A DNA stretch of 64,000 nt from Trichosphaerium sp. ATCC 40318. Its lineage: Eukaryota; Protista; Tubulinea. Under the pieces are notes generated by a model. The model ran no database searches. It was given only the letters and a program-made list of their open reading frames with translations, and was not told the DNA's origin. The stretch is taken from assembly GCA_038496445.1 (NCBI GenBank), contig JALMLS010000354.1:496001-560000 (forward strand), in the 5' to 3' direction. Positions 6,746 through 31,336 of the stretch are shown in pieces; within the stretch, counting starts at the first letter, position 1, and every line of letters begins with the position of its first letter. The position numbers and the translations under genes were made by a program.

Positions 6746-9700
6746 TTAATGTGGCGCCCATTTACCACATATACAACAGTTTGTTTTACCACTACCAAAT
6801 GCACAACTATTACATAATTTTGCTGGTATTTTCGTACTTCCACACCACTTTCCACATTTACAACAGTTATCTGCTTTTGAGCCGAATCTACAGTCATGAC
6901 ATCTTATAGCAAATGTTGTACTTGTTGCTATCCATTTACCACATCTAGCACAATTATCCTTACCAGAACCAAAGCCACAACAGTTTCCATAGTAAGCTGC
7001 CTTTTCTTCTCTTTTTTTATTTTCATTGTAAATCTTTTGTCTGTTCCTTCTCCATGGTGGTATCTTCTCTAGTGGTCCACGACATATAGCAACAAACAAA
7101 GCCTAAAACAAGTTTCAGAAGGTTATAGTGAATATGTTATCATACACATAATGGAGGTACACCATCATCAACGTTAATAGAATGCTCAGAATAGTCAACG
7201 AGCTAAAGACATTGTCAGACGTCAAGAAATTCAGTGAACTCTTTCTTTACCTTCGATTCGTCTCCTTTTACTGTCAGCTTTCCGTTCTCATTAAGAGTCC
7301 AACATATTCCATTATTATCTTCAAGGAAAGACTTTTTATCACATGAGTACACAGCATAAGTCCATGTTTGGTCTTGACGAAGAATGTGAGTTTGTTGAAA
7401 AAAGTATAAAGTCGCAATAAAAGGTACTTGCCTACAGCATCAGCCTTTAGTCTGAATTTTGGACTACCATCATTATCAACCAATTGGACATATCCGTAGT
7501 CTCTATGATTTGTTGCTTGGTCACTACAATGAGATAGACTGAATCCTCTTGTAGTAGCATGCCATTTATACTTCTCTTTTACATCATTCATGTCTACAAC
7601 CAACATCAGAACACAGATAATAACAAATCACAATAGATCTCATGTATCACTTTGGCAACACTCAAGAGAAAAGAAAAAAGAAGTTTAAAACCGAAATAAA
7701 AGCCATGACAATGAAGAAATTAATCAAAAAAACACGTGGCAAAACTGTTTTTTTCGTCTTGTAAAGAACGTACTTTGTAAGATACCGGCTTTGCCTCCAT
7801 CTTCGGCTGAGTAAGACCAACGCACTGATCCGGATGATATGTTACCACCCTTGTATGGATTAGAATACTTGGCACGTTGTACATCCATTTTTTCTTCATT
7901 GATGCGTTTCCTCTCTGCAGCAGCCTTAAGTCTTTCTGCTTCTTTGCGTGCAGCTTCTTCTGCCATTTCAGATCTTACTTTCCTTGATAATTCTCTGATA
8001 GTCTTGAGCTCTTCACAATTAGGGTATAATGCCTTGAGGTTCTTCTCAGCTCTAAAGTAAACGGATAAGTATGAGACGTCTTAAACTAGTTATTGTCGTA
8101 CTCATCTGCAGTGTACATCTCACATTCTCCAGCGAATTTCTTATGTACCTTTACACTTTCTTCTTTGAATGTGCATTCAATCTAACCACGGTTAAGTGAG
8201 CGGTCTTTCTTTTATATACGTACATCAATCTTCTTGGCTTCAATATCTTCAATAAGCATCTCAGAAGGTGAGTCATCATCCATAACGCCTTTAGTCAAAC
8301 TACATTTTGTCTCGGCACCTTCTAGGTATTTCAAAGCAGCAACTAATGGTGAAAGAGCACTAAAAAAGCGAACCAAGTCAGAAATTAAGTATTCAGGAAA
8401 GATAAAAGAGTGCGTACCTTGGGTATGTAACTGGTGTTTCTAATCTCTCATACTCGTACAAAGCCATATCATACAATCGACGAGCTTGGTACATGTAAGC
8501 AGAGTACTGGATCTTTGAAGGCCATTCTTTATTGACTTTTGTCATAAGAGCCTTAGCATCCTCAATATACTCTAATGTTACTGCGACCAATTCACTACCA
8601 GGTGCAACAGCTGACAACTCATCAACGTATTCTGTTGATATGATGCGTTAGGATAACAGCACAAAGAGGAACAAAAAAAAATAATATCACGTGCTTTGTA
8701 CAGTCGTCAAATATCTTGTTCTCATTGAACCTGTCTCTTGCTGCATTCTCTCCAATGTGCGTTGTTTATCAGTTGGTATTGAACCATCCAGAGCGACAGA
8801 ACTGCCAAGGAAATTGCGAATCTACAAAACGAAGTTATATAAGTATTGCTGTTTTGCTTTGGTGGTACCTTGTCAAGATGTTTGTTACAGTTTGCTAATG
8901 CGCTGTTGATGGACTTTAATGGTTTTTGAACGTTCAGTGGTAGTTTCCAGTTTACTTCAAACAACGTCATCTCGAACTGTAGTTGCATATTAGTACTGGA
9001 GGTTCAGTAGGGCGAGTGTACCTTTTCTTTTGGAAGCGCACCAAAGACACGCATGTTAAGTTTATCGACTTCTGTGATAAACTCTCTAACAGGGCCACAG
9101 TGTAGGTACAGTTTACGAAGGTCTACAATAAGTGCATTGATGTACTTAAGTTTCCTTCCAGCAACTTCAAAGTCTCCTTTACCCAGTGCATTTGAGGCTT
9201 CTTGTAGATTTGGTTTTTCTTTCTCTAAAGTTTCTGAATAGAGTTTAGAGTCTATTGCTTTACCTAGATGGAAAATCAACCTACAGTATTGGTAACATGC
9301 TAAGTTATAACTTACAAACATTGTCATTAAACTTTGCATTTGTGGCATCAACCTTCGCCAAGAGGGAAGCTGCTTGTTCGTTTTTAGGATGACAAACTCT
9401 CAACTTATGAACAAGACGGTTCAATTGTAAGAGCAATATTAGTCCTTGATTCTCTTGAGCAGTATCATAGGCTGTTTCAACCCACGTGATCAAGGCATTA
9501 GCACGTGTTTGTACAGATGAAACATCCTATTAAATAACATAAGACGAGGGGAGAAAAGCAAGAGGCTTACGTGTTTAGCAATAGTGTCTGCCATTGATTC
9601 ACTCTTTGCAAGAGCGGCATCAACCTGTTGTAGGGTTGTTTTGGCTTGTGCTACGCTTGCATACTTCCTTAAGTCTGCAGAAGCTTTCATAATAGATTCT

Positions 9701-12554
9701 CTAGTTTCTAAAACCTTATCAATATTACTGTCATCTACTGCAAGATGTAACAACTTCAAAGGTGTCTAAAAAATAACAAACGTTAGAGGGGCTTTTATAA
9801 TGTTCACAAACCTGAATCTTGCGGACTAGAACGCTAATATCGTGTTGCTGTATGATAGCTCCCATTTGTTCTTGTACATCTTTCAATAATTTGCTACCTT
9901 GGGCGTAAAGTCCTGATTTGGTGAGTTGGTTAGAATGTTTTGTTTTTTGAAAGTTTTACCTGATAGTTGTGATTCAGTCTTAAGGCTTTCCATTTGTTCT
10001 AAGCATTCAGTAACTTGTTTTTTGTAAACAGAACAGCGTCGAATATCTTTCTTTTCTAAAGCAGCTTTTAGGTTGTTTGTAGTACTATTTCCAAGAGCAA
10101 CAAGTTGTTCAATCTTTCTTTCTAAGAAAGAGTTAGCATGAAACTTCTGATGACGTTTTTTCTCGAATTGTTCATAACCAGTTTTCTTATTGTACTTACT
10201 CTTTACTAATCCTCCAATCTGTTTATCTACTTCTCTTTCTACTGTATCAACTTGTTTCAAAAAATCTTGTACTTGTTGAACAGATGCAAATGACCTTTAA
10301 CCATAGAGTCAACCAAAAAAAGTGTATTCATTTCCTTTCGAAAAGACGTACGTTCTAAGCTCTGCAGACAAAGTACGTAATTGGTCCAGGCTCAGTATGC
10401 ATTTTTCTACTTCTTTTTGTTCCAAGTAAGTAGCTACCCAATGTATTGCTTGAGCTGCAGGTTGAAGCTAAACCATATGAACAAATGAACGAAATAAAAA
10501 AAAACCAAGATAATTACCGCCCCACTGCTTGCTTGTCCCCAAAATAAAAAGACTACTGTAAACATACCACCAACATTGCTCTTGCTGCAAGAAGTTTAGG
10601 TCCAAGTGCCGCAATAGAAACCTCCAATTCCTTGGTATGTGTCTTACATAGTTCAACAGCGCTTTCACTTGCTAAAAGTTGTACTATAAGTACACAAATA
10701 ACCCTTTTCATACAACGTACTGAATGCTGATAGCTCAGTGACTAGTACTCTGAATTGTTCTATGCTTTGCTGCGCACGCACTAAGTAACCGGTTCTCATA
10801 CTACTATCCAAAGAGCGCTTAACACTCTGAATTTTGCGAACAATCTGGCTGACTTTAAGTTCTTCCACAATTTTGGCTAAATAACATATCAGCGAAAAAG
10901 GCTTGGTGCTCTTCCCATGGTACGTACGAACTTCTACTTCGATTAACTTCTTTTTCTCTTCGTAGTTTGTACGAAATTCATCCAGGAGTGGTATTTTCAT
11001 GCCATCAAAACGGCAAGGTGAGATAAGCTGTAGACAATCACGTGTTAGTTTTGGATACATCCGTTTGAAGTTTGTGTACCTCTGAAGCTGACTCTTGACA
11101 TCTTTCCCAGTAGTTAAGTGCTTTTGGCGCATCCTTCTTGTTTAAATATGATTCAATCTGTCTCAGGAACATATTGGCTTTTGTAGAAAGCTTCTTGACC
11201 TAAAGCACAAAAGTATTAGTATAACATTGATATCAGGCAAAAAACCATCCAGGAAAAACTAGTCGTACTTCATCCTCACATTTGATAGCCTCAAGTTCTA
11301 CTTCTTTTTCTTGCATGTATTTAACAGTTGTATTCCAGTATATCTTTCCATTATTAGAACTCAGTAGCTCCTCTTTAGCCTTTGCAACAGCTTGTTGAAG
11401 CTTTTCAAAATACTGTTGTAGGCGTGTTGGGTTACCACGCTTCATATTACTCTCAAGAGACCGCTTTGCGAGTTCAATAGGAGATGTAACCTTTTTCAAA
11501 CTCTGTGCAACAACAGCTAAGTCGAACCATCAGTATAAATACGTCATGCGTTATCAGTCTTACCATGTTCCAACTCGACAAAACTTTGGCGAACCTCTGC
11601 TAAAAAGGTTCCTTCCGCCTCCAAAACATCAATGTTAGGACCGATTATGGATTCTAGAGTTTTTCTGTACTGAAGTGCACGTTTTGCATCACGTGCAATG
11701 TAGTTTTTCATGAAGCTCAACTGACTTTGTATTCGAAAGTTAGTATTCCTTTTGTTACGCAAATTATTACCTTTTCATTTTACCATAGACAACCTTAAAG
11801 AGAGCAGCTTGTTCAGCTGGTAGATTACTACCTGGTGTTTGTTGTGCTGTTTTAGACGTTGAAGTCGGTTTTGGTGAAGAAGCAGTACTTCTGGACGTTT
11901 TAGTAGCGGCAGGTTTGGGAGCAGGAGCATCACCTTTTTTGAAAAGTATGAGAAAAAGACTTTTTGCTCGTTTAGGTTTGGAGACTTTGACAAATCACGT
12001 GGGTTATTACCTGGTTTGATGCCAACTTTTGCGAGATTCTCAAGCAGTTGCTTGCCAGCGTCATCTGATTCGAGGATAGCAACGCTTTCTGGTGTAAGAA
12101 GCTTTGCAATGTTCACATTGTATTGCTCTACACGTCTTGTGTTATTCTTTTGGGCATAGCTGTTTCTGAAGCGAAGCTTGTAGAAGGTTAAAACAAAAAA
12201 CAGCTTAAAAATGAGAAGTGTTGAGAAACGCTTACTTGATTGTTAATTGACTTTATTACTTTCTCTAGTGCTTTAGCTGCTACTACTTTCTCTACTTGTG
12301 CTGGCGCATCTGCCATAAACGTTTCTAGTTCAGTCTTGTATGCTTTTCCCTAAAAACGCGTCAGACGCACTAAAAAAGTATGGGTATACTTCAGGAGTTG
12401 CTTCTAGGAGGTCTGCTATTGATGCCAGCTTGTCGTTTATTTGACCCAACGCACGGTTAACTCTATCAGCATTACCTTGCTTTGTGTAGGTCGTAACGAA
12501 ATTACGTTGCGATCTAATAGAGTTCTGCACCGTTCTTAGCTTACGGTCTGCCAT
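6746..12554 (-). CDS. Large multi-exon protein: N-terminal helical-bundle repeats and coiled coil, C-terminal triple PHF5-like zinc finger
   Basis: Exons checked join in frame (e.g. VPPLC|ALFVAICRG). The C-terminus has three CxxCxFGSxxxNCxxCGKW-type units. Confidence 0.7.
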
Positions 12555-13036
12555 ATTGTCAATTCCGTTGTAGCAATGGGTTAGTATTCCTTTTTACGGG
12601 TTTCAAACGTGGCAACGATCTTCCACTGTTGCTTTTTGCTGAAAATAGGTTCACTGTTTGGCAATTTCTCATGAACTGACAGAAAAGCAACTCACAAACT
12701 TCTTTTAACTCATGTTACCCTTTAGAGCAATTTATACTAAATATACTATTAAGGGTTCAATAAAAATTCGTGTTTTCTGAACCTATGGCAATTTTATTGT
12801 AGATTGCTTTTTTATTGATTAAAACGTATTTCTTTCGCTCAATTTAAGCGTTACGAGTGTTTTTATTACCTTTGCTTTGCAGCAAACCTTTTCGTTATTT
12901 TTACATTCTTTTCTACAGCAATAATACCCCTGGCACTACCTCTAAAGTACAATAACGGTGTTTAATCGTTTGTTTGGTGTTGTTACTGGTCTACAAAACC
13001 TGTTTTTGTTAATTGTGTTGCTTCAGTTCCTTGTTC

Positions 13037-13478
13037 CTATAACTGTTGTTCGTAGCGTGTTACAAACATTAACACTATCGTAGCGCTACTTTGTGCATCT
13101 GCAAGAGGAATTGCTGCGTCTCGAATGTAACCACGCCTGAAAAATGCTTTCGTTACTCTCATTATTAGTGCGACGCGTAAATCAAGGCCTTTGTCTGTTG
13201 GCAATTGCAAAGCCCACTTATCTTCCTCGCTGATAAATTTAAACTTTAACACCTTACTTACCCGTTGTGTTAGTTGCAATTCAAGCACGTAATACGCTAC
13301 ACTTACTTTTTTTTACAAAATACTTCACAAGTCGCTTCTAATTGATTTAGTATATCATCAGGCACTGGCGCTGTAATATCTATCCGTTTACGGCCAACTT
13401 GAACAACTACAACGTCAGCAACTTCCATTGATACTGCTCTCATATCTGTAGAGCGTGGTGTGGCAGAATCATCCATTT
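13037..13478 (-). CDS. Hypothetical protein
   Basis: MDDSATPRSTDM... joins ORF 13037-13288 through one A-run frameshift. The 3' end is uncertain. Confidence 0.4.
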
Positions 13479-13898
13479 TGTGTTGATTTTCAGCTATTGT
13501 ACGCTTTTGAGAGATTGATAAAATTAGGTATTCCAGAAAACCGAATTAACTTAATGGCGTTACCCTTAATTGGAACTGGTTAATTGTTATGTTCGGTACT
13601 AATGACATTGAATGAAACATACATCAGGATTAGTGCATTCACATAGGCTACACATATTTTCGAGCGGAATTGACAGTATCCAAACCGGGAGTCTTTTGAG
13701 TTCGTTGTACCAATTTCGCGAGTATGTCATAACAAACCCATCCTTATGAATGTGATCAAATAGATGTTATCCTACAGATACACGAACGTTGTACATGTAG
13801 GGGCAACAGCGAGCGTGGGGTGGACAACACCTTTTTCTCTTGTTCTTTTTTTTCTTTCTTTTTTTTTGAAGGTTGTGCTCACGTGTTCACCAAAAGGG

Positions 13899-14124
13899 CA
13901 AGAGGAAATAACATACCTATTATTTTGATGGTAATAAAAGTGACCTAGAAGATGAAAGAAAGGTATCTAAAAAAGAAGGACAGAATTTGCAGAGCATTCC
14001 GGATGTATGTTTTTTAGAAACATCAGCAAAAGACAGCATTAATATTGATGAAAGCTTCAATCATATCTTGAAAACAATCATATTGAATATAAGAAATCCA
14101 AATACCAGTTGTACAACAGTCTAA
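13899..14124 (+). pseudogene. Ras/Rap/Rab-type small GTPase, C-terminal fragment
   Basis: With two frameshifts it reads IPIIL-GNKSDLEDERKVS...FLETSAKDSINIDESF...CTTV* (G4, G5, CAAX-like end). No G1-G3 motifs seen upstream. Confidence 0.7.
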
Positions 14125-14255
14125 AAAAAAACACACAGAAAAGTACTCTGTTATCTAATGTAGCAATTTAAATATAAAGTGATTGTTGTTAGTGTATTGT
14201 TTTATATTACATCTCTTTAGAAACTAACAAAGTACTCTAACATACGTTTATTTAG

Positions 14256-15102
14256 TTACACTTCAGTATAATTGCCACGCTTTCCTAGAGAGTTGTTTTA
14301 GTGCTACAAAGGTTTTTAGAAAGGTATGTTACCTCGATTTACAATAAACATGACACCGTCCAAAACAAGGCCAGGGAATCCGAGCCAAAACTCCTGTACC
14401 TGTTGTCAATGATAAACAGAAACGTTCTATAACGTGCAGTGTTTGGGAATATTGTTCCTGTCCCGCGAGCAACATTGTAAAATATTCCTCCAACAATGTA
14501 AAGTACAACACCGACCAATAACACAATACAAAGAATAGAACCAATACTGATTCTACCGCCTTTCTCTACTGGAACATCGCTACTAATAGCACACGCAGCG
14601 TATGACTCAGCGGTAATATGAATGTTCGAGGAACGGTCTTCAATTTTCAAGTTATCGAGCTCTGAGAGCAAGTCAATTGGAATTAAAAAAAAACAGTTCA
14701 AAAAAAATGCTAGCGAGTCATTAATCACGTGCCTCCAGCACCTTTTTTGCATAAAATTTCAACTGAAAATAGATTAGTTTGTTTACATCATACTTAGTTT
14801 CGAACCTATTGCACTCCTTCCAAATTCGCCTCCGTTGTATCTGATACCGACACCTCTACCACTTGATAAACCACTTACGCTCACTGGAACGAAGTTACCA
14901 ACAACTGCCTGCGGAAAATGTCAGGTGGTTTTCAAAACAAATCAGTCGCTCAATCGAGCTATGAATGGTCTAGTACGCTTCTAAACATGTAGAACCACAC
15001 ATTCCAATACTGTCATTTTGACTGGAAGCTCTAGATTATCAATAAAAAAGATAAGCAAAATCTATTTTTGGTTAGAATACCCCATGTTGTTGATATTAGC
15101 CA
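14256..15102 (-). CDS. ATG27 / cation-dependent mannose-6-phosphate receptor-like type I membrane protein
   Basis: IRYNGG...VEILC...AAC, then TM segment GSILCIVLLVGVVLYIVGGIFYN, PNTEFW...LDG and C-terminal YTEV*. Contains two GC-AG introns. The 5' end is uncertain. Confidence 0.75.
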
Positions 15103-15475
15103 TAGTTAATTGAGTTAATGTGTCTTCTGTTGAGATCAATGTTGAGCTTCGGTCTCACGAATTCAAACGCCTGAAATGATTACATATTCATCCATAAATT
15201 CCAGCGATTTTTTTTTGTTTGATATCGGAAGAAAGTTGAAGTTTGCAATGTCAGCTTTGCAACTGTTTACACTTTTTAAGGACAACAACACCTTAGCGCG
15301 TTCATTGAAAGAATTGAAGTCAATTTTGTTAGAGTTTGTGGTTAGAGGCTCTCTACTCAAAACACGTGACCATGTTGAAAAATTAAAGAAAAAAATAATA
15401 CAAAAGCAAAGCTGTTTCGAAAAAAAGCAACAACTGAGCCCAACAGCTTAAGCATATTCTATTGGGTCTATTTAA

Positions 15476-16680
15476 ATGTCAAAGCGCACTGCTGTTACAT
15501 TCCACAAATCCCCAAACCCCGTTTTCTCAATACCAGAGCTAGTGTGCCACGTAATAGAGTTTGTAGATGAAGTTTCGGATGTAATGGCATTATTGGGCGT
15601 AACGGCAACGTGTTGGCAAATAACACATTCCAAATCGCTATGGAGAGATATGTCTCTTCGATTTGGTATTGACATTGACTGCCTTGCTACTCTCGCATTG
15701 ATAGAATCTAATAATATTTGGCGATCTCTATTTATACATGGTACATCAGTTAGATCGACAAAAAAAACCTGTCTTCATTCACTGTCAGTCTCTTGTAGTC
15801 TCATTGATAGTGCATGTTACAGTTCCAATATGGTGAATGGCCTTGTAATAGAACAACACAACTCATGTCTCACCAAGCCAGAACACTAAACTACTTTACC
15901 ATTTAATCCACTGCTATTAATTATGAATTAGGTGTATACAGGTTTGCTATTGGCAAATGTGCCTCTTGTAATTCAGATTGGTACAGGGTTGTCGTAACAT
16001 CTGTCATAGTTTCAAAAACAAACATAGAAGTATCTGTTGAGCTAGAATACAACAAAAAGAAATATCCTTCTCTCATAAACTTATTGGAGCGGTTGGACAC
16101 CCCAATTCATAGTAAGCTTGCTAGTAGTTTAACTAACTTTACTTACTCTGAAGTGCCACATATTTTATACATGATTGGTACATTTGGGATGGTGGAGAGA
16201 ACTTGTAACAACTATGAAGGGAGTGACTTAAATCCACGAAAAGGTGTGTTCAGCAAAACAGTTTTTTTACTATTTGCTACTTCTCTGCCGGGATTATTTC
16301 TTATTTAAATGTAAGGTACCTTCTTTTTCGATTCAAATATTCCACAAGATGCTGTTGGTGTTTTGTTTGGATTTGATCATGGGTATGTTAAGCAATCTTA
16401 TCAGAATGTTGATTGTCTTCAATCCAAAGTCCTTATAAATGATAGGTGTTCTGAAGCTCAGATACTGTCCTGTAATGCTGAAACAAAGAAATACTCTGTA
16501 TACACAAACTGGCCGCCTTTTGTAAATGAGTACTGGATATAACAACGAGACATGGTGGTAGAAACATAGTTGCAAACAAAGAACAAACAAAGAAAACTGT
16601 GTCCACTTAGACTCAAAACACTTGTTGAAAATGAATTCTTGTCAAATCAATGTACCTTTTTATAAAACTCAATAAACTTG
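15476..16680 (+). CDS. F-box-like protein
   Basis: VFSIPELVCHVIEFV...VTATCWQI...LWR is F-box-like. Downstream exons are fragmentary. Confidence 0.55.
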
Positions 16681-17536
16681 TGGGTGTGACTCTTTACCGA
16701 GCGTTTGAACGAGCTAAATGTAGATCTTTCTACTAACCAAAATGAATCTAGGGCAAGCACAAGAATGAAACAGGTTCGTGACAAGTGTATCCGACAGCAA
16801 CAATTGGTAAAAAAAATTGTTTGCTCAACAGTGTTTTAGACCTTGCTTTATCAGGTCTTTCTTCGCACTCCTACAATCCAAGACAGGCAAATAGTGGCCC
16901 ATCATGTTAGCTATTAACCTCCTTTGCATCGTATTTTATTGGCATAAATGTACGAATTCGCTTTCGTACCAAGAGAAACTTCCATCAACCACTCAAGAAA
17001 ACTACAACGTCCATTCTGTTAAAATAAAAAGAACAACTTTTTTAGCAGTGGAACTTTCGTAGTTGTAATCTCATCTGGGGCAGTACTTGTAAATGCGCCA
17101 ATTTAAGAACAGTGTAAGTGATATGAAATGCGTATATGTAAACTTCGTTGCGATTAGAAAACTAAGCAAATGATTCGAACAAACCGTTTTTTTGTCTTTT
17201 ATTTTTATTTTGAATTTGAACCACATGACACTATTGTTGACATTAAAAAGGACAACCTTTGTCTAAATACGCTGTTGGGCACTACTAACACTAGGTTAAA
17301 ATCACGTGCTTCGTATCAATAAAAATACCGTCCCTTTCCTAACCCAAACGCTAGGAAATAAGAATCTCAAAATAAAACGAAAACACGTGATGAATTAGCC
17401 TTATTTTGGAAGTAACACTATCTTGCGCACCAACAGTGGGCTAGCGCCAGCAAGTGTTTACTAGCGCGCTAGTTTTTGGTGAAACAACATTTGTTTTTTA
17501 AACTTTATCGTACCACAAGCGCAACAACTGCCGAGA

Positions 17537-19021
17537 ATGACTAGAAGTCTCTTCGTCACGCTTGTTATCGCATTTTTATGTAGTTATGTGCTTGGCACGT
17601 GGAACACTCCAACCATTACCGACAACAATCACTATTGGAAACAACAGATAAACGCTGGTAACGTTCAACGAGACTGGGGAGAACAATTCTCTGCTCGAAC
17701 AAAAGCTGACTTAACAGACTGGGTTGATCGAACCGGAGACGGTTTCATTGGTCGAAACAACCAGCACTTTAAGCCCGATGGCACGTTTCTTGGTGATACA
17801 AGAGGGCAAGACAACAATGATGGCTTCTTAACACTAAGATGTGGTTACTTACCTTCAAACGAACACTACACGTGGACATACAACGGGCAACAACAAACTG
17901 TTAAGTGGTACTCTGGTTTCTTTAATACAATCGATCCTGTTTGTATTCCACAAAGATTTTATGAGGCTAGAATGCGTGTATCAGCAGTCGGAAACAACGC
18001 AGCTGAAAACCTCGCTCATAGTTTTTGGATGATTGATAGAGGTCCTATTGGCGCCGCTGAGATTGATGTCACAGAGGTGGTACCCTTTGAACCAGATCGT
18101 ATGCCTACGAACGTACACAGCACCGACAACAATATGGGATACAGAGCTCCAATAACTTTGGATACAGATTGGAACTACTACGGGATGTTGGTTGAACATG
18201 ACAATATTGAATGGTTCTTTAATGGTAGACGTGTTCGTAGAATCATCAAAGTAAACGATAACCCTCTACAGTATCAATCTCTTCCAGATAATAAGTTACA
18301 TTCTGGACACACAGCAACACAACTATTCTATATTACAAGATCAGCTAAGCGTATCATTTTTGACCAAGAAGCTCTTCATGGACCTATTCCTGGAAATCCA
18401 CCTAACTTTAGAGACTCTAGATTTTATGATCTGCAAGTTGACTACGTCGCTAGATACACAGTAATAGGTACGCACCGAAAACTCATGATACCTTTGTTTG
18501 TAAATGGATGCTTTTAATAACGTTACTAAGGTCGGCCTCCACCTCCACCCTCTCCGATACCACCACCTGTAGGCGGTATATTCGCGTTGAGGAAAGGGAA
18601 CGCTCTTGACTTTGCCCTCGATGGTGGGAACGGAGGTGAAAACAATCAGAATGTTTATTTGTGGAAGTATAGCAAAACAAATGCAAACCAACACTGGATA
18701 GAGGTCAGCAGAGATAACAACTACTTTTTGTTACAAAAGAGGAATACACTCTTTTGTCTGGATGGAGGAAACGGTGGAAGCAATGGACAGAACTTAAAGC
18801 TTTATCAGTGTAACTACGGAAACGGAAACCAACAATGGAGAAAAGTTTCAATAGGAAATGGAAGATTTAGATTAGAAAAAAGAAACGCAGCTGCTTACTC
18901 TATTGATGGTAACAATGGTGGTTTTAATTCACAAAATGTAATATGTAATAATGTAATGTAATATTTGTGGTCTTCAAATAACGGTAATCAAAACCAACAG
19001 TGGCTGTTTGAAAGTGTTTAA
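17537..19021 (+). CDS. Secreted glycoside hydrolase family 16 with C-terminal ricin-B (QxW) lectin domain
   Basis: Signal peptide, GH16 catalytic motif EIDVTE, Pro-rich linker, three NQxW ricin subrepeats. One intron at about 18468-18529. A 21-nt insertion carrying an in-frame stop lies at 18941-18961. Confidence 0.85.
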
Positions 19022-19206
19022 TCACGTGCTTCTAAATAAATAGTTATAGAACACATCAAGTTGTACTTCTTGTCTCCTTGCTTTGTTACTACTTTAGTAA
19101 CAAAGATTCTCATTCTCACCAATATCTGTTCAGATACCAATAGTTCATTTGGTTGAGTCATATAGATATCGATCTAATAGAGTACAGCTGAAGTAATTTT
19201 AGTATT

Positions 19207-20935
19207 TTACAATGAATACAATAACTTGGCATTCTCGTTTAATATCTTAGACCCAATTGACTTTGCTTCCTCTAATGTCAAGTCACCATCTTGTATAAGA
19301 TCGTCTAGTACATCAGCAAGATTTTCAATACCTGTCAAAGAAAATAATGAGAAAAAAAATTAACGCTGAAAAAAAACAGTACCTCGTTTAACACCAATAA
19401 AAAACAGCTCTGGAATTTGAGAAGCATCGGTTGAAAACATTATTTTCGACATCGGAGCGAGTTCTAGTAGTGATTTGTATGCTTGTTTAATGCCTGTAAA
19501 CATGAGTAATCACTCACAGTCAAGAACTCAATGTTGAAGGTTGGAACTTACCAGATTTAGAAGCACATAGCTGTACAAGACCGCAATCCAAGTATACATT
19601 ATCATATACTGACGCTAGATAACTAGCTTCACGTGTATAAGGATAACTTGCTAATGTAATTTAAGTTAAAACTCTACAACAATTAAACCCCTAACCATGC
19701 AATAGTACAACAGGAGCGTCTTTGTACGCCTCATTTTTAAGCAACTTGCGAAGATGAAGTGGATTTGCCTTGAAAAAAAAATCACGTGTCAGCCAAAAGG
19801 TGCTTCGCTTTTTACAAAGAAACTTCGTACATAAAGAAGGTCTTCATCTGTATCTCCTAGTCCTGTATGGAACTTGCTCAAGGCGTCAGTTTCTTAAGGT
19901 ATTCTTGTTTGGATTTTGTACCTGTATAGGCAGCTTTAATGCAGCTGAAGCTGCCATACCCTTGTGGACGATGTACGCAATGAAATCCTTATGTGATATC
20001 CTTGTTGATTTTCCTGATTTTTGGTTTTCCTTCAGCTCGTTAAAGCACGCTCTAGAATAGGCTTTATTAGCTGATATACGTATTATGAGGTACAGTCGCA
20101 TACTCAACAAGGTTCTGTGGTGGCATTTCTTCAACGTTTAGGCCCGATCTGTAAGCACAAATGGATTTGAAGCCAACTTTGTTTATGTTTAGTATTTGGC
20201 GATAAAAGTGATGGGTTAACGTACCAACATTATTTGGTGGCGAATTGATGAGTGCTGTGAAGGTTTTGTCGAATTCTACAAATGACTTTGATTGTTTTGC
20301 TGTTTCTTCTGCGACATGCTGTTAAAGTACTGTTAGCGCGTAGGTAAGATATACTGGACGTCTATTTGAACCTGAACGTACTTCAAGTCTCAAAATGCGC
20401 TTTACACATCTAACGAATTTGCCGTGGTCTTCTGTTGCTATTACCGTACCTGGTATGAAGCCATCGTCGATTAGAAGTGTATCAATCTGGTTAAAGTTAA
20501 TCGCAACGGAAAACTTTTTAAAGCTTTCGAAAAGGTCCAGTTTGCGTTAAATAGCTTCGTACGTTGCGAAAGCAAGCGGAATTTAGTTCATCTGTAGAAA
20601 AAGAGCACCTCGCTTTAAGAATCTCTTCCTCTGTAACGCCTATGGACTCAAATAGTACTGCAAGCTAAAATAAATAAGGTTTGGCAACTAACAAACAAAA
20701 GTTACCTCTTTTAGAGCACGGGTATAACTGAGCGTCGTTCTCGCGTGTTTGACCTAGTTACAGTGTCAATAAAGTGATTTGACGTATAAAAACTCACCAT
20801 GGATAAATCAGAGCACTCACAGAACATTAGCGGGTATTTAGCTTGTAAATCGTCATCTTTGAGTACTGTGAGATTGTGGCAGTGTTGATCAATAATTGGA
20901 ACACTGTTTAGGTGCTTCAGCAAGTTGTTTGCCAT
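19207..20935 (-). CDS. FluG/NodGS N-terminal-type amidohydrolase (no glutamine synthetase domain seen)
   Basis: PIIDQHCHN, LLIDDG, RILRLE, GFKSICAYRSGL, LPIQVHTG, ASYLASVYDNVYLD, KIMFSTDA. Confidence 0.85.
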
Positions 20936-21311
20936 GACGGATAAATTTGGAGTTCACGAAATATTAAGCCACTTTTGGAGAAAAGGCACGTGCAGTATTT
21001 TGTAGAATATATCAATGGATAGGTTGCGTTCAAAACCAAGGATACTGTCGCACACAAACCGTTAAGGTTAAGCAAAGCATGACCTTTTACCATGTCTGTG
21101 GTTTTTTATGGCGTACAAACCTGGTTTTATGGACGCTCGAGAGGATGTCAGCGACTTAACGTATAAGTCAACAGGATCTCAGGCTTCGTGACCAAGCGGT
21201 CAAGAGATAGGTTCTCCAATATGTGTTGTTTGTAGGAGCCAATGTACGATAGGAATCCAACATTGATGCAAAAGGAAACGGTATCTACTTTATTGGATAG
21301 TTTGCTACAAA

Positions 21312-21789
21312 CTACATAATAATACAACAAAAAGGCTTAACTTTCGTTATTGCCTGGTTGGTAATATGCATCTCAAGACCATCTCCATTATTTACACCAA
21401 CTGATTTCAGCTGAGCTTCCTTTTCTAAAACACCACCTTTGAACATTATTTTCGTGATTGTAGGTGTTTGCGACATCTTTATTTTTGCTTGGCGCATGTG
21501 AGTTGTTTGGCCTCTACCTCCAAGGCAAACTGCCACCGCTTTCACTGCGTCAGCACATGTGCCGTCTTCTGCTAGAAAAACATCTACCGTTTGCGCTAGG
21601 TATTTGTTAAGAAAGCTTGCATAAACTAACAACACGAAGAAAAGGTAGGATACCTCCACCTAAACCAAGCCCTGCTCCGATTCCAGTGCCTCCTGATATT
21701 AGTTGCGCGTAAGGTCCGTTAGGCAGACTGTCAGTGAAGTTAATCTTAGCGATACAAGTGCTGTTTATCTCTGTTTTTACTTGATGCAT
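21312..21789 (-). CDS. Ubiquitin-like domain protein with C-terminal CAAX motif (CCIIM)
   Basis: Two exons. KIMFKGGVLEKEAQLKSVGVNNGDGLEM matches the ubiquitin-fold pattern. Ends CCIIM*. Confidence 0.6.
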
Positions 21790-22280
21790 TGCCGTCTGAG
21801 TATTTGTTTGTTTGTATTGGTTGTATAATTGTTAGCAGCTCACAACGGAATAAGTAGTGCAGTTTGTTAGTTCAGAGAAATATTCCTATACCCGATACCT
21901 TCCTGCTTACCCAAACGTAATAGGAACTGTTCGTAAACGTTAATACAGAGTAACGATGGTACCTACAATTGTTTTGTAGTTCTAAAGTCACGTGATTGAT
22001 CGCAATGAATGTGCTTGTTTCTTTGTTGGGTACCCGAAACCTAAGTATTACTGGTTATTGCGTAGGCATCTAAATGCTTAAGGTTTATACTCACTCAAGA
22101 TAAATTTTAAATGAGGTAAATTCACTAAGTGATGGCTTTTTTTTATAGAGCAATGCTGATTTAGCGACATTTTGTTACTTAGTTTACTGTGCTTGACTAT
22201 TTCTGGTTAACACGTTAATAACATTAACGATAGACGAAATAACCTACAACTCCCGAAACTAAAAGGCTGTTGTACTACAC

Positions 22281-23132
22281 ATGACAGCGAAACGTGAGGT
22301 ACCCAAAGTTCAAAACGAAACTGCATCTTGTACTTACCATCAAGCTTAGATTAAACCCTCAGACTCTGCTCTAGAACAACCGTATTTGTTGAATCTTCCA
22401 CTTGAGCTTCAGCTGGATATTATAGAGCTAGACTTTGAAGTATACGTAAAGTGGCCTCTCTTATCTAAGCGCACAGCGACTGCGACCAGATTTAACTATT
22501 ACCTTGAAAAACATGGTAAATGGTTTAAAAAAAAGGGAGGCTACGATGGCCACATTATCGAAGAGAATACTTATTTACACGGTAAAAGAGAAGGACAATT
22601 CAAGAAGTGGAATTGTAGCAATGTACTGATTGAAAAGTGTAATTTCTATAACGACGTCATTCACGGAGATTACATGTCTTGGGACGTAAATGGTTACCCA
22701 AAGTATCAACTTCAATACGTACACGGTGTTCTCGAAGGAGAGGCCAAGTATTGGCGTGATGGCCAGCTAAGGTTCGTAAAGAATTATGCGAATAACAAAC
22801 GCGAAGGAGAATACAAATGCTGGAACGCAGAAGGTCTTCTGCAGCGTCACTTTCATTACGTTAATGGTAATCTTGAAGGAGAGGCAAGGCACTGGTATAG
22901 TAACGGACAAATATACGCACTAATACGATATGTTGAAGATAGTCCTTCAAATGAGTATACGTATTGGTACAACAACGGACAGATGCGGAAACAAAGTAAG
23001 TCTAAAAAGGGCAGAAAAGGTAAAGAAATCATTGATATTCGCACGTGGTGCCGTAACGGGCAGAAAAGGCATTGCAAGCGCAGAAAAAGGAGAAGCCGAC
23101 GTAATAAACCATCTAACGTAAAGAATCTATAA
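22281..23132 (+). CDS. F-box-like plus MORN-variant (YwqK-like) repeat protein with basic C-terminal tail
   Basis: A short first exon (MTAKRE) is spliced to LLNLPLELQLDII. Repeats of GxxEGxxKxWxxNGQL. Confidence 0.8.
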
Positions 23133-23433
23133 ACTAAGTTACAACAAATAAATTGAAGTTTACCCAGTTTACCCTATTGTGTAGCTTTTTTTCAGTTTTT
23201 GTTCATTGTAATTACAACTTCACACTTTAATGGCCAAAGAGCACAAGCAAAGACATACAGCTGGCCGTCATATCAGCACTTGTCTTGAACGAGAAGAAGG
23301 ATGTCAACTCTTTGCCTATGCCATTTTACGTACTTTGTAAAAAAAGGAGTGGATGTAAACTTAGAGTAGCTGCCGAAAAAACTTTATTGTTGTACAAGAT
23401 TAATTTTTTTGTTGTTTGTTCAGTCATTTACTT

Positions 23434-26400
23434 CTACAAGTCTACTTTTACGTCTTGTGTATCTACTATTTTTTTGAGTCGTGTTATCTCTGCTTCAAGG
23501 TCTGCTATTTTAGTGTACAAGTCTGATTTAGCGGTATCCATCACTTCCAGTGATTTATTGTTTTGAGAATGTTTCGAAACATTGAATCTAGTGCCTGTGC
23601 TTCCTGTAGCACTCTTAATTGTTTGATTCATATAAATCATCTTTGGTATGAGTATAGATAATATAGATACAAGAGGTCCAAGAAGAAAACATAGCGATCG
23701 AATAATATAAGCAACTTTTCTATCTTCTCCTCCAGCAACAAACTAAAATCAAAAAAAGAATTAGTTTTACTCTCACTGAAGCTTTCTTTAAAAACTTTTC
23801 TTACGCCTAGTATAATCACAAGAACTATGAAGAAAGCTAGTGTATACACAGCGAATCCTATAGACCTAGGATAGTGTTAGTATCAACAGAGAAACAACAT
23901 TCAAAAAATCTTGAAGCAGAAACATACTTTGATTCGTTGTAGAGTACTGACTTTAAGTGCCAAATCCTAACGACATAGTACATTCCAAATAACAGTACTA
24001 TCATCTAGATTATATAGCATAAGCAAACAACGGTCATGAAGAAGAGTGACTTACATTCAAAGAAATGCCAACAATTACAAAAATCAAATCAGTGCTCGAA
24101 AATCGACACCTGAAGTAGTCGTCTGATAGAACATATCTATCATTTTCTATCAACACAGCTTCTCCCGGGCTTACGATAGTCCAAACAGTCATTAGAATTA
24201 TATTTACTGCTACTATAATAGCGACAATCGGAATTATCATCATGTCTGTTACTTTGAATATTTCAAGCGTTTTTACCAAGAAAATTTGAGCAATCCGATA
24301 AATACGTGCAAACAAAGCACCATAAAGGAGCTAAAACTAGTTAGTACACACTTACAGGTAATCAAGATCTGCGAAAAGGTGAAACGTACAGCGAATCCGA
24401 TGCTTGGGAACCATCTTACAAGAGTACAATGAAGGTTTGATGTGTGTAAGCTCCAGAAGAATACAGTACAATACATTATTATAGAACCAACCTTGCAGTA
24501 AAATAAGCAAAAAATGATCAGTTTCGAGGTCGTTACGTACCATTGCTATGACTACAAATATCGGTTGAGAAGCTCGAACAATTTGATGGTTTCTGTATAT
24601 TAAAAACCAAGTAATAAGTCCAAGAGTGAATATAATAACAGCAATAGTAAGAGCGGCCATTACGTATTCGCTAGAGTACACTAAAAAATATAAGAATAAC
24701 GACGTGAAACTTTGCGTTGGGTTTTACGTTGATAGCAAAGAATCACGTAGGGTTTAATTGCGGCTACATACCATACCAACCATAAGTTGTAATTCTTTGC
24801 TTCCATGTTGGCACAGGATAGATAATAGGATTGGTTATAGAAACAAGAGGTATCAAAATTTGTGGTTTGAGGTTCTCGTCATATTGAAGTGAAACAGGAA
24901 TTATACCAATATTCTGTCCATACACATCAAATTGAACAGGTCCTCCAGCTCCTTTGATACTTAAACTATTTATTGCCATTCTTATTGCTTCCGGATCGGT
25001 TGACCTAAAATAGAAACAATTAAGAAAAATTTAAGAAAAACATAAAAAAACCGCTTCAAATTATCACGTGATAACCAACAAAGCAAAGTTGCTATTCTAG
25101 ATTATTTTACCCTGCAGTCTCCACGCCATGTTGAACTACATAACCAGCCATGTAGGCTATCATAGCATACGAAATATCGAATCTAGCATCTGGAAAACGT
25201 TCTTGAAATTTTCTTTCAAATATTCTTGCAGAAGTTTCAGTGCCATTACTAATAAAGTGATGATAAGACGCTTGATCTAAAGCATTCTCATCGAATTGAC
25301 TTCCTCTCAGTCGCGGATCCCACTGAAATGATAAACAACGTTAAAAGCCAAAATAAGAAAAAAAGGCTATTCGTACGACTGCCCCTGAACCGAATATGTA
25401 ACGACCGTCTTCTTTGAGTGTTGAAGGTATTCTCGCGTAACAAGGATGAGGCATAATAAACGCCTATGCGGTATAAGTAGGAATGATGAGAACCAAAAGC
25501 GCAAGTGATTTTAAGTCTATCTAACCTTCGCATTAAAATCCATTTCTTTTGCCAGTTTCATAAAGGTTAAGCATGATGTAAAACTAGCCCCAATGACTAT
25601 ATCTACCGCGAAACAATCTTGAGTATTCATTACATTAAGATACACATACCTGGCTTTTTAATTTTTAATTTGTTGATAAACTCTATAAGTTCTTGTCGCT
25701 CTTTCTCTGGATTGGCAGTCACGTTAACTAGTCTCAAAGTCTCCACCAATTCCATGTCTGCAAAATCAGTAGTACGTTGTGTACCACGCGCTATTTCTTC
25801 AGTAATTGCGATATCTATAAAACAGATGTTGTAAGAACACCTTAGTTGAATTGTTTTTGTCATTTTTTTCTCGAAATACTCACTTTCATAAAAAAGAGCT
25901 GCTTTTTGGCCTCCATTTGTCTTGAGCAAGTTGATAACATCGCTAACGAACTTATCAACGGGGAACGACTGTCCAACACTCCAAGGAAACCTTCTACCAT
26001 AAGGTACTTCGCATGGATATAGCATATCCTCATCACAAATGAAAGCGTTAACGGCGGAAGTGATCACTAATATTGTTGTCGTTAAGTCACGATATTATTC
26101 ACAAAGAAGAGAACATTTAATCATGTTCGTACACATGTTTGAGTTAATCGAGTGGTTATGAGCAACCTTCGCAGCTGCGACACCGAGTTCTGTCGTGAAT
26201 GGCTAATAGGAGTTAAAAAACTGCAAAATACTTCACGGGTCCTTAGATCACGCCCTAAAGCGCCCGTTGTGGTATAAATCTCAAATGCTAAACACGAAAA
26301 AAAGTGGTTTACAACAGCTTTTGCGCTTATAAAAGTTAAACACGTGCCAAAAACAGGTAGTCTGGTTTATAGTCTAATATAAGCTCTTCTGTTGCTTTCG

Positions 26401-26761
26401 CTGCTTCTTCTTCTGTTGAGTCTGAATTAATAGTTAGACAGCGTAAACTACGTCATAATTACATACTTGTTCCTTTGTAGATAATTTCTACCCTGTACCG
26501 CTCTGCCCCAATGAGGAAACCTCCTCTTTCAGGCAACCCAGAATTAACCTGAAAAAAGTTAGAGAAAGTAAAAATCACGTGGTGTCTGAAGATCTTTTGT
26601 TCTCGTACATTCTCTGCCCATAGCTCGTAACCATTTCTGTTCATTTGCCCAACTAGAGTGTTTACAAAACCACTGACAGGGTACAGTGCGCCAATACGAA
26701 AAACAGGCATAGTAGCTACTGCTACAACACATAATGCCAGAAGCAGCGCTTTTGTTGTCAT
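23434..26761 (-). CDS. Class C (GABA-B-like) GPCR with periplasmic-binding-fold ectodomain
   Basis: Signal peptide, FRIGALYPVSG ectodomain, YRNHQIVRASQPIF, LFARIYRIAQIF, LMTVWTIVSP, coiled-coil tail. Confidence 0.85.
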
Positions 26762-27686
26762 TGTTTAGCAGCTATTGAAGTATTTGCGCTAGAAGTTTAT
26801 TTGTAGGTATGTTTAATTTCCTCTAGAGATAACCAGCGATGAGTTGTGGAGTACACACGAGAGAATTGTTTGTGGTTAAGCCTTGTGTTACAGGGATTAA
26901 AAAAACTGTGAAATTTAAATAAATTTGGTGTAGCAATTGTACCTTGGTGAAGTAAAGCAATACTTAGGCACTTGCGCATTTTTTGTTAATCTGTACAATT
27001 TTTAGCACTGTATTATTTAGGAAAGGCGATTAAATTTCTCTTTTATTCCCGTAGACCTATATCAAGGCGTTTGATGGTGCTTCATGAAAAAATAGAAGTT
27101 ATTTTACATTAAATCACTTTGAACACTTTTATAGCTGAAAGTAAACTCGCCGTTAGTTCTTCTTTGTCACGTGTAATTTTTCTATTGAAGCGATCAAAAG
27201 GGTACATTTTTTACATTGTCAGAAAACCAACGAACGTTCTGGCGCTTCCACACGCATAATTCAGTTCTCTACGCACATTACTTGATATTATAAATTCTTC
27301 TGTGTAATAAAAAAAATTGTACCTATCCGGACATATTAATCGTCCGTATGATGCATTTTTCGTTACGTAGAAGGATTATTACGGTTTAATCCTTTATGTC
27401 ACAATTGTAGAGCCTTGGTGAGAAGAACGTATTTCAAACCGTTCAGGCGGAGTACATATGTGAGTCACTACTGCACTACGTTAACCATTCCGCTCAATTT
27501 GTTATTGTTAAGAATTCTGGAACACAGCTTGAAAAAACTTACAAAAAAGGGGCAGTTATGAAAAGTCTGGCGAAAATAATAGTTTGATGGTTGGCTTAAA
27601 GCCTAGCTACTGTGCCACACAGATCAAATTTAGCGCGTTTGAAACTGGTTGCGTATAAAAAGAAACTTGAACGGTTGGTGTCTAAT

Positions 27687-30600
27687 TTACATTGTACTGA
27701 CAGTTACATCAACTCTATTGATTTGCGCCCTTTTTCTACGAGCAACTTCTTGCTAAAAATAAACCAGTAAGCCACAACCAGTACTTACAAATTAAACGTA
27801 CAATATTGTGTAAGTCCCAGCGTGTTATAATACCAGCAACTTTATTTGAACGCGTCACTAAGCAAAGGGTTTTAGTTTTTTTTTGTGGAAAGATTTTTGG
27901 GGTTTTGTGTTCTTCGTACCAACAACAAGATGTCTTAATCCCATAGTTCTGAATAGTCTAAAAACCCTTAATAGTGTATAATGTTTACCAACAGTATAAG
28001 GCATCGTATTCATATATGGAGCAAGATCAATATGTTTGTTTTTATCACTGTCCGTTAGACTAACTGTATCTAATGATGGGAATCTTGGATACTCCTCCAA
28101 GAAGTCTTCAACCTTAAGTTGTGCTTGGTAATAGTTTCTATGTATAGCTTGGAGTTCTTCAGCATCAATGAATTCTTTCTTTTGTAGAATCTTAACAAGC
28201 TGATACCTGTAATATCGCATGTCAATTTATAACAAAGTAAAGAAGAAAAAAAAACCGAACAAACCTTAAAATTATTCCTCTAAAATTGCCTGCAGTATCA
28301 GTTACGGGAAATCCACTGTGTGATGTATTTTGAAGCATCTTTGGGAATAGGTTAATATAAAGCTACGAATGCTACCAAATAATGGACGTTTGAATGCATT
28401 GGGCAACAAGAACTGTAAAAAATTTAAAACAATGACGTACAGAATATACAGTACTAACAGGCAAGACTTCACGAACTACATGACAGCCCTTACTCATTAC
28501 ATCAGCAGCTGTAAATTTTCTCATCCTAAAATCTGCTTTCCAGTGCATGAAAGGAATATCCTTGAACTCTTTTAGCTTAAAAACACGCAACTTGAACGAT
28601 ATTTTTGTCTGCTACAAAATGGCAATTGAACAACCTTGGTTTTGGCCTACCTTAAGCTCAATATGCTCATCGTAGATGCCTTGCGTAAACAAGTCACCTA
28701 CCCATTTTGCGACCAAAAGTACTATCATAATAGGCACACCATAAGTTAAATCTAGACAAAAGTAAATAAGATTCAACAAAACAATAGAAAAGAAGTGAGC
28801 AATCTTACCATTGGTTGATTCAAGCATGATAACAGTGAGGGATCTAGGTTATAATAAGCGAAATTATTGTCACTATAGAAAATAAACTTATTACATAGTC
28901 ATGCGTACACAGCCACCTAAAAAGGAGGCTGCACCTATCAAAGCAAAAGTTCCTGCGTCTGCACCAAGCCCTGGAATAAAATGTATAACAATATTACCAA
29001 CTAAGCGACCCAACGTTGCTCCAGTTAACATACAAGGAACAAACCTAGAAAAAAATGAGCCAATAAAACAGCACGAAGTCAAATGGACTTACAGACCGGA
29101 TGGTACAGATATACCGTAAGTGATACATGTCAACAAGAAAAAAACAATAAGAAATAATCCAAGCGTTAAAGGATTGAATATCTCTTCACTATCTTCAGCA
29201 TGAAAAAGCATGAAAATCGCATCTTCTTGTGTAGTAAAGAATATTGTTGCCATATCATTATAATATCCCTTGTTTTTTTGATAAGCATGTGATACACGTG
29301 ATAATTAAAACAAAAGAGGAAAAAAAATTCCAAAAAATACTAAGAGTTTTAGCCGGTGCTGCTGATGCCGCATAGCAAAGAGATAACTTACTGTTGGACA
29401 ATAAAACTGGAATCTAGTGAATTCTAAATTCTTAGTTTGACTAGAAGAAGGAAGAGGCCTTAAAAGAGTTTAAGTCTTTTAACATTTATGATTGATAAAG
29501 ATTGAAGATCGTACTTGCACTCGTGAAAGTAATAAGATAACCAAAATGATAAACATGCTGTCAACAAACCAATAACAATCGCCTACAATACCATTAAGCG
29601 CACATGTGGAAAATAACGGGTCATTGTTTGCTACCTCTATGAAGCGACCGTATTTCCATGTTATGTATTTGTTACGTAATTTACTTATACGTAAGTTAAT
29701 GAACACTAAAAGAGCGCCAGCTAAGCCACCCAATATGCCAATCAAAACAAAAAATGGAAGCATTTGGATAGTCCATCCATGGTTATTCTGCTGTGTGAAA
29801 TCGCCGAAATTGGTGAGCCCTTTTTGTTTGTTAAACCGTTGTATTCGCTTAAAATAATATACCTGGTGATGTAAGAACTCCCCAAGTTCCTGTACTTCCA
29901 GATAAGAGAAAATTTAGTGTAAAGGTGGATGTCATGGAACAAAAGAAAGAACGCCAAGTCAGCGACTAAAACTAGCATTAACATCAAACAGAGTCCTTTG
30001 TCGTACTTGGTTCCAGAATGATGCTCCTTCTTCCAAACTAAATAAAACACCTCCAATTGGTGCTCCAAAAGCTGCAGCAACACCAGCAGCTGCACCACCA
30101 GAAACAAAATCACGTTTTTCATGATCATTGTGAAAGTATTTCAAAACATCTAACAAAGAGTGTAAGAAAAAAGACAACGTATTGTGCAGTCATATACTTG
30201 TTTCATAGCATGGGAAGGTTGCTGATTTTCCTTGACTAATACCAGCAGCAACAATAGCACCACTGTGAATCATAGGACCTTCTTTTCCTACAGCTAAACC
30301 ACCAGATACTGAAAATAGTACACCTATTGCCTTTGCAAATAACGTTTTCATTCTAGCCACGTGAGGAACCTTAATACCGTTCAAATAGCTTTTTATCTCT
30401 GGTATTCCAGAACCTCCAGCAACAGGCTAATAGGCTTAATTAACAAAACACCAAACACTTCAACTGAAAAAAAAAAATCAAAAAAAAACACGTGCCTCAA
30501 TGATGGCTACAAGATAACTAGCACAAGCAACCAATGCCCCATTAATTGTCAAGTAAGCCAAAAATGGTGGCCAAACACATACTTTACATTTAGAAACTTG

Positions 30601-31097: not shown

Positions 31098-31336
31098 TAG
31101 TGCTGGATTTTGTTTCTGTTCGTGTAGGTGAGCGATGATAAACAAAATAAGCGTGTGTAGCATTGTTTGCTAACAGCATCAGACACATATCGATGTTCAC
31201 GTACGTATTCTAAAACTAGTGCTTGTGCGTACTTCACCACAACATACAAACGGAATACGTCAAAATGTTAAAATTGACATGTTGGTCTATCAATTTCTTC
31301 ATTTTTGTTTGAACAGGCGAGCAGATTGCTCTTGTT

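Follow-up and report, generated by a model that had tools for sequence, protein, structure and literature searches.

The GT at the start of an intron is among the most conserved signals of eukaryotic genes. In a 64-kb stretch of the genome of the amoeboid protist Trichosphaerium sp. ATCC 40318 (contig JALMLS010000354.1, positions 496,001 to 560,000; hereafter the window, meaning all 64,000 nucleotides), an earlier note made from the sequence alone had proposed that several introns begin with GC instead, that all of these read GCACGT, and that an altered recognition by the U1 or U6 small nuclear RNA (snRNA) may lie behind the pattern. The locus raises the question of why the second letter of the splice signal gives way, and why in this one sequence context. 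Our analysis identifies a small set of GC-AG introns whose donors are coupled almost exclusively to the palindrome CACGTG, the most over-represented hexamer of the window. The second letter of GT appears to yield where doing so completes this palindrome.

GC-AG introns in the window

The window has a G+C content of 37% and is densely filled with exons and introns that are both short. We trained a gene model on the window, with RNA-confirmed introns as seed; it predicts 26 genes with 201 introns, or nearly eight introns per gene. The predicted introns have a median length of 55 nucleotides (nt; 10–90% range 43–100 nt), and the model assigns 36.7 kb of the window to exons, 13.1 kb to introns, and 14.2 kb to intergenic DNA. 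The donor dinucleotides GC, GA, GG, AT, CT, and TT were each allowed singly, GC at a penalty of 3 nats; a donor-neutral model in which eight dinucleotides were allowed was dropped because intron starts could not be placed with it. The self-trained model recovers all nine RNA-confirmed GT donors, and its acceptors are less reliable, one RNA-confirmed acceptor being missed. All results refer to this one window, and the donor logo is drawn mostly from predicted introns. RNA reads were checked over positions 25300–31300 in two runs, both with small shares: run X1, a transcriptome whose contigs are 100% identical to the window, and run X2, from a relative 90–99% identical to it. The GC introns with donors at 8694, 14437, and 14732 lie outside the checked interval. 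Three host genes are needed to follow the introns:

6746–12554, minus strand: coiled-coil gene, 1451 amino acids
23434–26761, minus strand: receptor-like gene with a ligand-binding domain and a seven-transmembrane (7TM) domain of seven helices
27687–31163, minus strand: CLC-7-like chloride transporter gene

Each of the six intron starts named in the earlier note reads GCACGT on the strand claimed for it. The corresponding introns, together with one further candidate, are as follows:

26203–26347, minus strand: GC-AG intron of 145 nt, donor GCACGTGT, intron 3 of the receptor-like gene (RNA contig and gene model)
30427–30495, minus strand: GC-AG intron of 69 nt, donor GCACGTGT, intron 4 of the CLC-7-like gene (homology and gene model)
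14662–14732, minus strand: GC-AG intron of 71 nt, donor GCACGTGA, in an ATG27/mannose-6-phosphate-receptor-like gene (gene model)
14400–14437, minus strand: GC-AG intron, donor GCACGTTA (gene model; acceptor ambiguous)
8632–8694, minus strand: GC-AG intron of 63 nt, donor GCACGTGA, intron 18 of the coiled-coil gene (gene model)
7373–7431, minus strand: candidate GC-AG intron, donor GCAAGTAC (ambiguous, with GTAGGC 4 nt upstream and GTACCT 4 nt downstream)
62889–63056, plus strand: claimed sixth GC-AG intron, donor GCACGTCA (unsupported)

With GC at its 3-nat penalty, the gene model picks all five minus-strand GCACGT introns and the ambiguous GCAAGT at 7373–7431, a GC share of about 2.5–3% (5–6 of 201). 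One of the five is confirmed by RNA and one by homology. The control dinucleotides GA, GG, AT, CT, and TT drew one to four calls each, several of them merely patching the true acceptor at 26203, and their gain in total score was much smaller than that of GC; once the penalty is removed, every dinucleotide class climbs to noise level. The plus-strand intron at 62889–63056 is not supported: the model skips it and places the site in intergenic DNA, and the flanking reading frames are open only briefly.

The RNA-confirmed case is intron 3 of the receptor-like gene, where an X1 contig joins 26202/3 to 26348/9, its match ending at 26203 and continuing with 15 letters identical to 26349–26363. The intron 26203–26347 therefore runs from GC to AG, and the GT located 6 nt downstream within CACGTGT is excluded as the donor. 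For intron 4 of the CLC-7-like gene, the earlier note had set the junction after the residues IE, and nine CLC-7-like homologue fragments place it exactly there, after E. Exon 4, aligned alone to these fragments from a word search, runs ungapped through its last residue in nine fragments; exactly four residues (PVAG, PLAA, or PAAG) precede GSGIP in 9/9, and exon 5 starts exactly at P195/P199 of the solved CLC-7 structures. The exact exon 4/5 junction in nine homologues excludes both the GT 15 nt upstream and the GT 6 nt downstream of 30495, and forbidding this donor costs the gene model 3.4 nats after the 3-nat penalty. A search of the PDB with exon 4 alone gave no match, and X2 contigs near 30487 are uninformative on the junction.

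The other three introns come from the gene model, with graded support. Forbidding the donor at 14732 costs 7.1 nats, which is good model support. Exon 4 of this gene matches positions 162–220 of the Pfam family ATG27, a word search with the same exon returned no homologues, and Pfam searches of the upstream open reading frames (ORFs) left the 5′ part of the gene unsettled. The GC donor at 14437 is retained with modest support (0.9 nats after the penalty); the acceptor at 14394, as the earlier note had it, is ambiguous, and the model prefers 14400. An ATG-started ORF of 137 codons (14339–14752, minus strand) runs in frame through both GC-AG introns of this gene, so a retained intron would yield another open product instead of a stop; for 14662–14732, the unspliced ORF from the ATG at 14752 is a caveat to the intron call. 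Support at 8694 is likewise modest (1.2 nats after the penalty). Here, read-through of 8632–8694 hits a TGA inside the donor motif, and a branch-like CTAAC is found 16 nt upstream of the AG.

On the intron side, the secure GC donors are uniform: ACGT occupies positions +3 to +6 in 5/5 of them versus 29/195 GT donors. Their exonic side is not strengthened. The letters preceding the five donors are AAA, ACT, GAG, TTG, and GAG; the base at −1 varies (A, T, G, G, G), as the earlier note had observed, and positions −1 and −2 are no better than average. The introns differ from the U12 type, with donors GCACGT rather than GCATCC and no TCCTTAAC branch site, and their 3′ regions carry CTAAC-, TTAAC-, or TTGAC-like sites, as in GT introns. 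Inspection by eye revealed no sequence shared among the GC introns beyond the first seven letters, of the kind that would mark an introner or transposon origin. The motif GCACGT(G) is not sufficient by itself for splicing: predicted exons contain ten copies in sense orientation, several within long ORFs that consist of a single exon.

GC donors coincide with an over-represented palindrome

Four of the five GC donors read GCACGTG and thereby complete the palindrome CACGTG at positions +2 to +7, a feature overlooked in the earlier note. A G at +7 follows 4/5 GCACGT donors but only 2/29 GTACGT donors (Fisher p = 0.0015). Seen from the other side, +2 is C in 4/6 GYACGTG donors versus 1/28 GYACGT donors in which A, C, or T comes next. 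Among GTANGT donors, +7 G occurs in 5/56, under the intron background of.147. Because the donor matrix of the model penalises +7 G, this contrast does not arise from detection.

No hexamer of the window is more over-represented than CACGTG, which has 61 sites versus 9.9 expected under an order-1 model (about six-fold) and stands 2.1-fold above the maximal-order expectation. The sites are strand-symmetric, dispersed, and present in all three sequence classes. Intergenic DNA has the highest density, 1.9 sites per kb, ahead of introns (1.45) and exons (0.41), and the palindrome is most often extended to ATCACGTG/CACGTGAT. About 19 of the 27 intergenic sites fall in the roughly 500 nt before a gene start, the spacers themselves being short. 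Of the 183 occurrences of ACGTG in the window, 122 (67%) have a C in front, the same two-thirds as at donors. Highly iterated palindromes of the HIP1 type, known from cyanobacteria, are short palindromes that are many-fold over-represented and dispersed through unrelated genes. CACGTG resembles them in being a palindrome several-fold over expectation, dispersed, and found on both strands.

Two paralogous F-box genes keep CACGTG just upstream of their ATG. The site is part of a conserved minus-strand element, TGACTGGCACGTGA followed by AAACCTAT or CAACCTAT, present in two copies (CACGTG at 50498–50503 and 52469–52474), the second of which precedes an F-box/LRR ORF at 50977–52461. Judged from the sequence, CACGTG in these two copies has the look of a promoter or leader element that was retained when the gene duplicated.

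Both GC-AG introns and the compensation they show are textbook knowledge, and for one amoebozoan a +4 C consensus with a matching U1 is on record. That GC donors are tied almost exclusively to a hyper-abundant palindrome appears to be new; a literature search on GC-AG introns with CACGTG, and on GCACGT, returned nothing relevant.

GT donors favour C at position +4

The GT donors of the window provide the background against which the GC donors must be read. Their logo (n = 195) is:

Exon side: −2 A.56, −1 G.51
Intron side: +3 A.82, +4 C.53, +5 G.64, +6 T.50

At +4, C (.53) is followed by A (.23), T (.23), and G (.01), and the commonest donor hexamers are GTACGT (29), GTACGA (19), GTATGT (15), and GTAAGT (12). 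The preference for C, put forward in the earlier note, is borne out here and holds against the model's own donor matrix: among 83 GT donors that have no alternative GT in frame, +4 C is still.48. It is also visible in the raw sequence, independently of any model, where AGGTAC occurs 64 times versus 22 expected and GTACGT 58 times versus 22, and GTAAGT is not enriched (52 versus 48). All 29 sense-strand copies of GTACGT in gene spans are predicted donors; inside predicted exons the hexamer occurs zero times in sense and six times in antisense orientation, and GTAAGT occurs seven times in sense orientation. The eight GT donors cited as examples in the earlier note all read GTACGT or GTACGA and are all predicted donors:

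34508–34575, plus strand: intron with a GTACGT donor, an example of the commonest class
2220, 34679, 34854, 37791, 46007, 48710: further starts of predicted GTACGT donors
35783: start of a predicted GTACGA donor

C is nevertheless a favoured, not an invariant, letter at +4 of GT donors; among RNA-confirmed GT donors it occupies the position in 3/9. The +4 classes C, A, and T have equal frequencies of +5 G and +6 T, with no sign of compensation. The RNA-confirmed GT-AG introns, all on the minus strand, are:

25323–25376, 25464–25525, 25603–25649, 25815–25883, 26067–26132, 26422–26466, 26549–26608: seven introns of the receptor-like gene (23434–26761), run X1
28207–28264: intron of the CLC-7-like gene, donor GTTTGT, run X2 contigs
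28561–28650: intron of the CLC-7-like gene, donor GTAGGC, run X2 contigs

The seven X1-confirmed donors are GTACGA (three), GTATGT (two), GTTAGA, and GTGAGT. At 25603–25649, one X2 contig departs from the X1 junction, with a skip of 42 and one extra letter, showing that close relatives do not use identical splice sites. The acceptors predicted by the model are TAG (124), AAG (44, or 22%), CAG (28), and GAG (5), and those confirmed by RNA are TAG (5), CAG (4), and AAG (1). A branch-like YTRAC motif lies 8–20 nt before most acceptors.

U1 genes on metagenome contigs

The snRNA that would read these donors has to be sought elsewhere: Rfam at gathering and permissive thresholds found no U1, U6, or other snRNA in the window, which also has no transfer RNA (tRNA) gene and no other Rfam family. 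We scanned metagenome contigs for U1 with ACGTACCTG and checked the matches against Rfam. Identical U1 genes with the 5′ end AUACGUACCUG, at 70 bits (Rfam threshold), are located on L004 (1638–1803), L007 (1960–2125), and L011 (1584–1749). These contigs have 55% G+C and come from three metagenome samples, and their U1 genes are flanked by tRNA genes. They represent a second environmental lineage with the U1 change known from Mastigamoeba.

A fourth contig, L010 (Ga0115011_10117186), carries three U1 paralogues on one strand between 224 and 1410, alongside two U5 genes and a tRNA gene. In the paralogues UCACGUACCUGG (57 bits), UCACAUACCUGG (66 bits), and CCACUUACCUGG (68 bits), the recognition base opposite +4 is G, A, and U, respectively (ACGUAC, ACAUAC, ACUUAC). 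Their expected partners are C, U, and A, which are also the three letters in use at +4 in the window; G, which no paralogue would match, is nearly absent there. The first paralogue begins UCACGUAC, that is, with CACGUAC, the full complement of which is GUACGUG. L010 has no CACGTG excess, and we treat it as a lead only, not linked to this organism. Our literature search found no report of such a three-isoform U1 set.

Further features of the window

Besides the receptor-like and CLC-7-like genes, recognisable genes encode a GH16 protein, F-box/LRR proteins, and the ATG27/mannose-6-phosphate-receptor-like protein. The last exon of the coiled-coil gene (6746–7102, minus strand) contains four cysteine-rich repeats of the CxxCGKW type that have no Pfam match.

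Weighing the explanations

At a probability of roughly 55%, we favour the reading that these are ordinary U2-type GC-AG donors, tolerated on the best intronic consensus only, with a C at +2 that is linked to pressure for CACGTG at the level of DNA. The 5′ splice-site consensus of this intron-dense protist would be (A)(G)/GTACGT, the slash marking the exon–intron boundary, and a GC donor would work only where the rest of the site is optimal, here with ACGT at +3 to +6. The need for this best site would explain why GCACGT is common to all secure GC donors. At the level of DNA, a pressure would favour CACGTG, candidates being selection for binding sites of E-box/G-box-type factors or a sequence-biased repair or modification process, and would convert GTACGTG donors to GCACGTG by a single T-to-C change. 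The spliceosome would tolerate C at +2 because the remaining intronic letters match the consensus. The introns, the donor logo, the coupling of +2 with +7, and the palindrome excess are shown here; we infer both the direction of this change, from T to C, and the action of the pressure on DNA; as a source of the CACGTG excess, binding-site selection is an equally good candidate as a mutational process. The +7 G coupling, the unstrengthened exonic side, and the CACGTG excess fit a DNA palindrome effect better than simple compensation through U1 pairing, and the account is independent of what reads +4 C.

Several points weigh against this reading. The numbers are small, with five GC donors and six GYACGTG donors, and only two GC introns are confirmed independently of the gene model. 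The model can detect a GC donor only where the remaining positions score well, and weaker ones would be missed; the statement that all GC donors read GCACGT holds for the detectable ones. The single-mismatch neighbours TACGTG and CACGTA occur 19 times versus 23 expected and are not clearly depleted, so a strong mutational drive is not shown. Finally, with a U1 that starts CACGUAC, as the first paralogue of L010 does, the +7 G could be read by U1 and the coupling would be an RNA effect.

This last point leads to the explanations at the level of RNA. The interpretation offered in the earlier note stands in its observations, namely real GC-AG introns, a shared GCACGT, and a dominant +4 C in GT donors, and it is fair to infer that the spliceosome reads +4 C well. 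The step from there to a changed snRNA is less secure, and we consider it somewhat doubtful that this organism has a U1 copy with ACGUAC. A full account along these lines, which we judge unlikely, would have a U1 with G facing +4 (ACGUAC, perhaps CACGUAC) pair completely with GUACGU(G), GC donors depend on complete pairing on the intron side, and the CACGTG excess be unrelated. It draws strength from +4 C being the top letter, three-fold over background, from the absence of sense GTACGT in predicted exons where GTAAGT is present, from the ACGUAC of Mastigamoeba balamuthi U1, and from the existence of Rfam-supported metagenome U1 genes with ACGUACCUG (70 bits on L004, L007, and L011, 57 bits on L010). 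These genes, however, are not assignable to this organism. Moreover, +7 G is unfavoured in GT donors and −1 G is unfavoured in GC donors, contrary to compensation based on pairing; A and T are equally common at +4 without compensation at +5 or +6; and the coincidence of the GC donors with a palindrome six-fold over-represented is left unexplained. A standard U1 also accompanies +4 C in Thecamonas and is found in Mamiellales and 69 yeasts (bioRxiv 10.1101/2022.06.08.495308; PMC10581693).

A variant of this idea replaces the single changed U1 with several isoforms that have G, A, and U facing +4, so that C, U, and A donors are fully paired, G finds no partner, and GC is confined to the perfect site of the commonest isoform. 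We regard it as improbable, even though the three U1 paralogues of L010, next to two U5 genes, provide a model for such a set, the +4 frequencies of the window have the expected form with G nearly missing, and the three +4 classes share their +5 G and +6 T frequencies. The missing compensation fits equally well a +4 that is not read by U1 at all, L010 is neither tied to this organism nor rich in CACGTG, and the +7 G would be left unexplained. Among the readings that involve U1 or U6, the weakest is a U6-side change, in which the +4 preference would move off A through a changed ACAGAGA box or through loss of SNRNP27K or of METTL16-dependent m6A. Across yeasts, +4 preference is linked to METTL16 and SNRNP27K, but the switch known there exchanges A for U and does not lead to C (PMC10581693). 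We regard this reading as very improbable here. The same low standing applies to mis-modelled junctions, in which the real donors would be nearby GT sites, such as the GT in CACGTGT 6 nt downstream, and the GC-AG calls would be artefacts of keeping the frame. When GC is forbidden, in-frame GT alternatives are indeed available at small cost for 8694, 14437, and 26347, and an unspliced ORF spans both introns of the gene near 14400–14750; RNA, however, rules out the downstream GT at 26347, homologues rule out both GT alternatives at 30495, and the GC calls exceed those of the control dinucleotides, with a larger gain in score. 

Beyond the favoured account lies a bolder form that we hold only tentatively, and consider doubtful, in which DNA pressure for CACGTG overrides the near-invariant T at +2 and so makes a GC-AG class, and/or +4 is read by a small family of U1 isoforms as a multi-reader code. 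If the palindrome effect is true, a core signal of RNA processing is open to reshaping by a force at the level of DNA sequence. With a +4 C preference and nearly eight introns per gene, this organism is also a good test case for the co-evolution of splice-site consensus and U1 snRNA, which to our knowledge has been documented only in Entamoeba and Mastigamoeba, two lineages of Amoebozoa. A further possibility, now directly searchable, is suggested by the three U1 isoforms clustered on L010.

Comparison with known systems

The closest counterparts of the introns described here are the U2-type GC-AG introns of animals and plants (Sheth et al. 2006, PMC1557818), with which they share the C at +2, the 3′ AG, and a rest of the donor nearer to consensus. 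In animals and plants, GC donors match the species consensus more closely than GT donors do and are strengthened on both sides of the junction, and they make up 0.37–0.86% of donors in five model species (PMC1557818). The window differs in several respects: the GC share of 2.5–3% is several times higher, ACGT rather than AAGT occupies +3 to +6, the exonic side shows no strengthening, and an extra G at +7 completes an over-represented palindrome.

The dominance of an atypical letter at +4, as in the co-evolved U1 type of Mastigamoeba and Entamoeba, is present here. Mastigamoeba balamuthi, also an amoeboid protist, prefers C at +4, and its U1 reads ACGUAC, the exact variant predicted by the earlier note (Roy and Bowser 2022, bioRxiv 10.1101/2022.06.08.495308). 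Its donors are GUGCGC, in contrast to GUACGU here, introns per gene are about three times more numerous in the present genome, and in Mastigamoeba the U1 gene has been found. Thecamonas trahens and Mamiellales likewise prefer C or a pyrimidine at +4, and their known U1 genes are standard, as are those of 69 yeasts (bioRxiv 10.1101/2022.06.08.495308); +4 C thus need not mean a changed U1. Saccharomycotina resemble the window in that +4 is the donor position most variable between species. Parker et al. (2023, PMC10581693) describe switches between A and U in this group that occur without a change in U1 or U6 and associate them with METTL16 and SNRNP27K, a model that does not cover +4 C.

As for the palindrome, the HIP1-type elements of cyanobacteria offer the nearest likeness. 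In the window, by contrast, the host is a eukaryote, and the over-represented sequence is a six-letter, E-box/G-box-like CACGTG that is densest in non-coding DNA and overlaps a splice signal.

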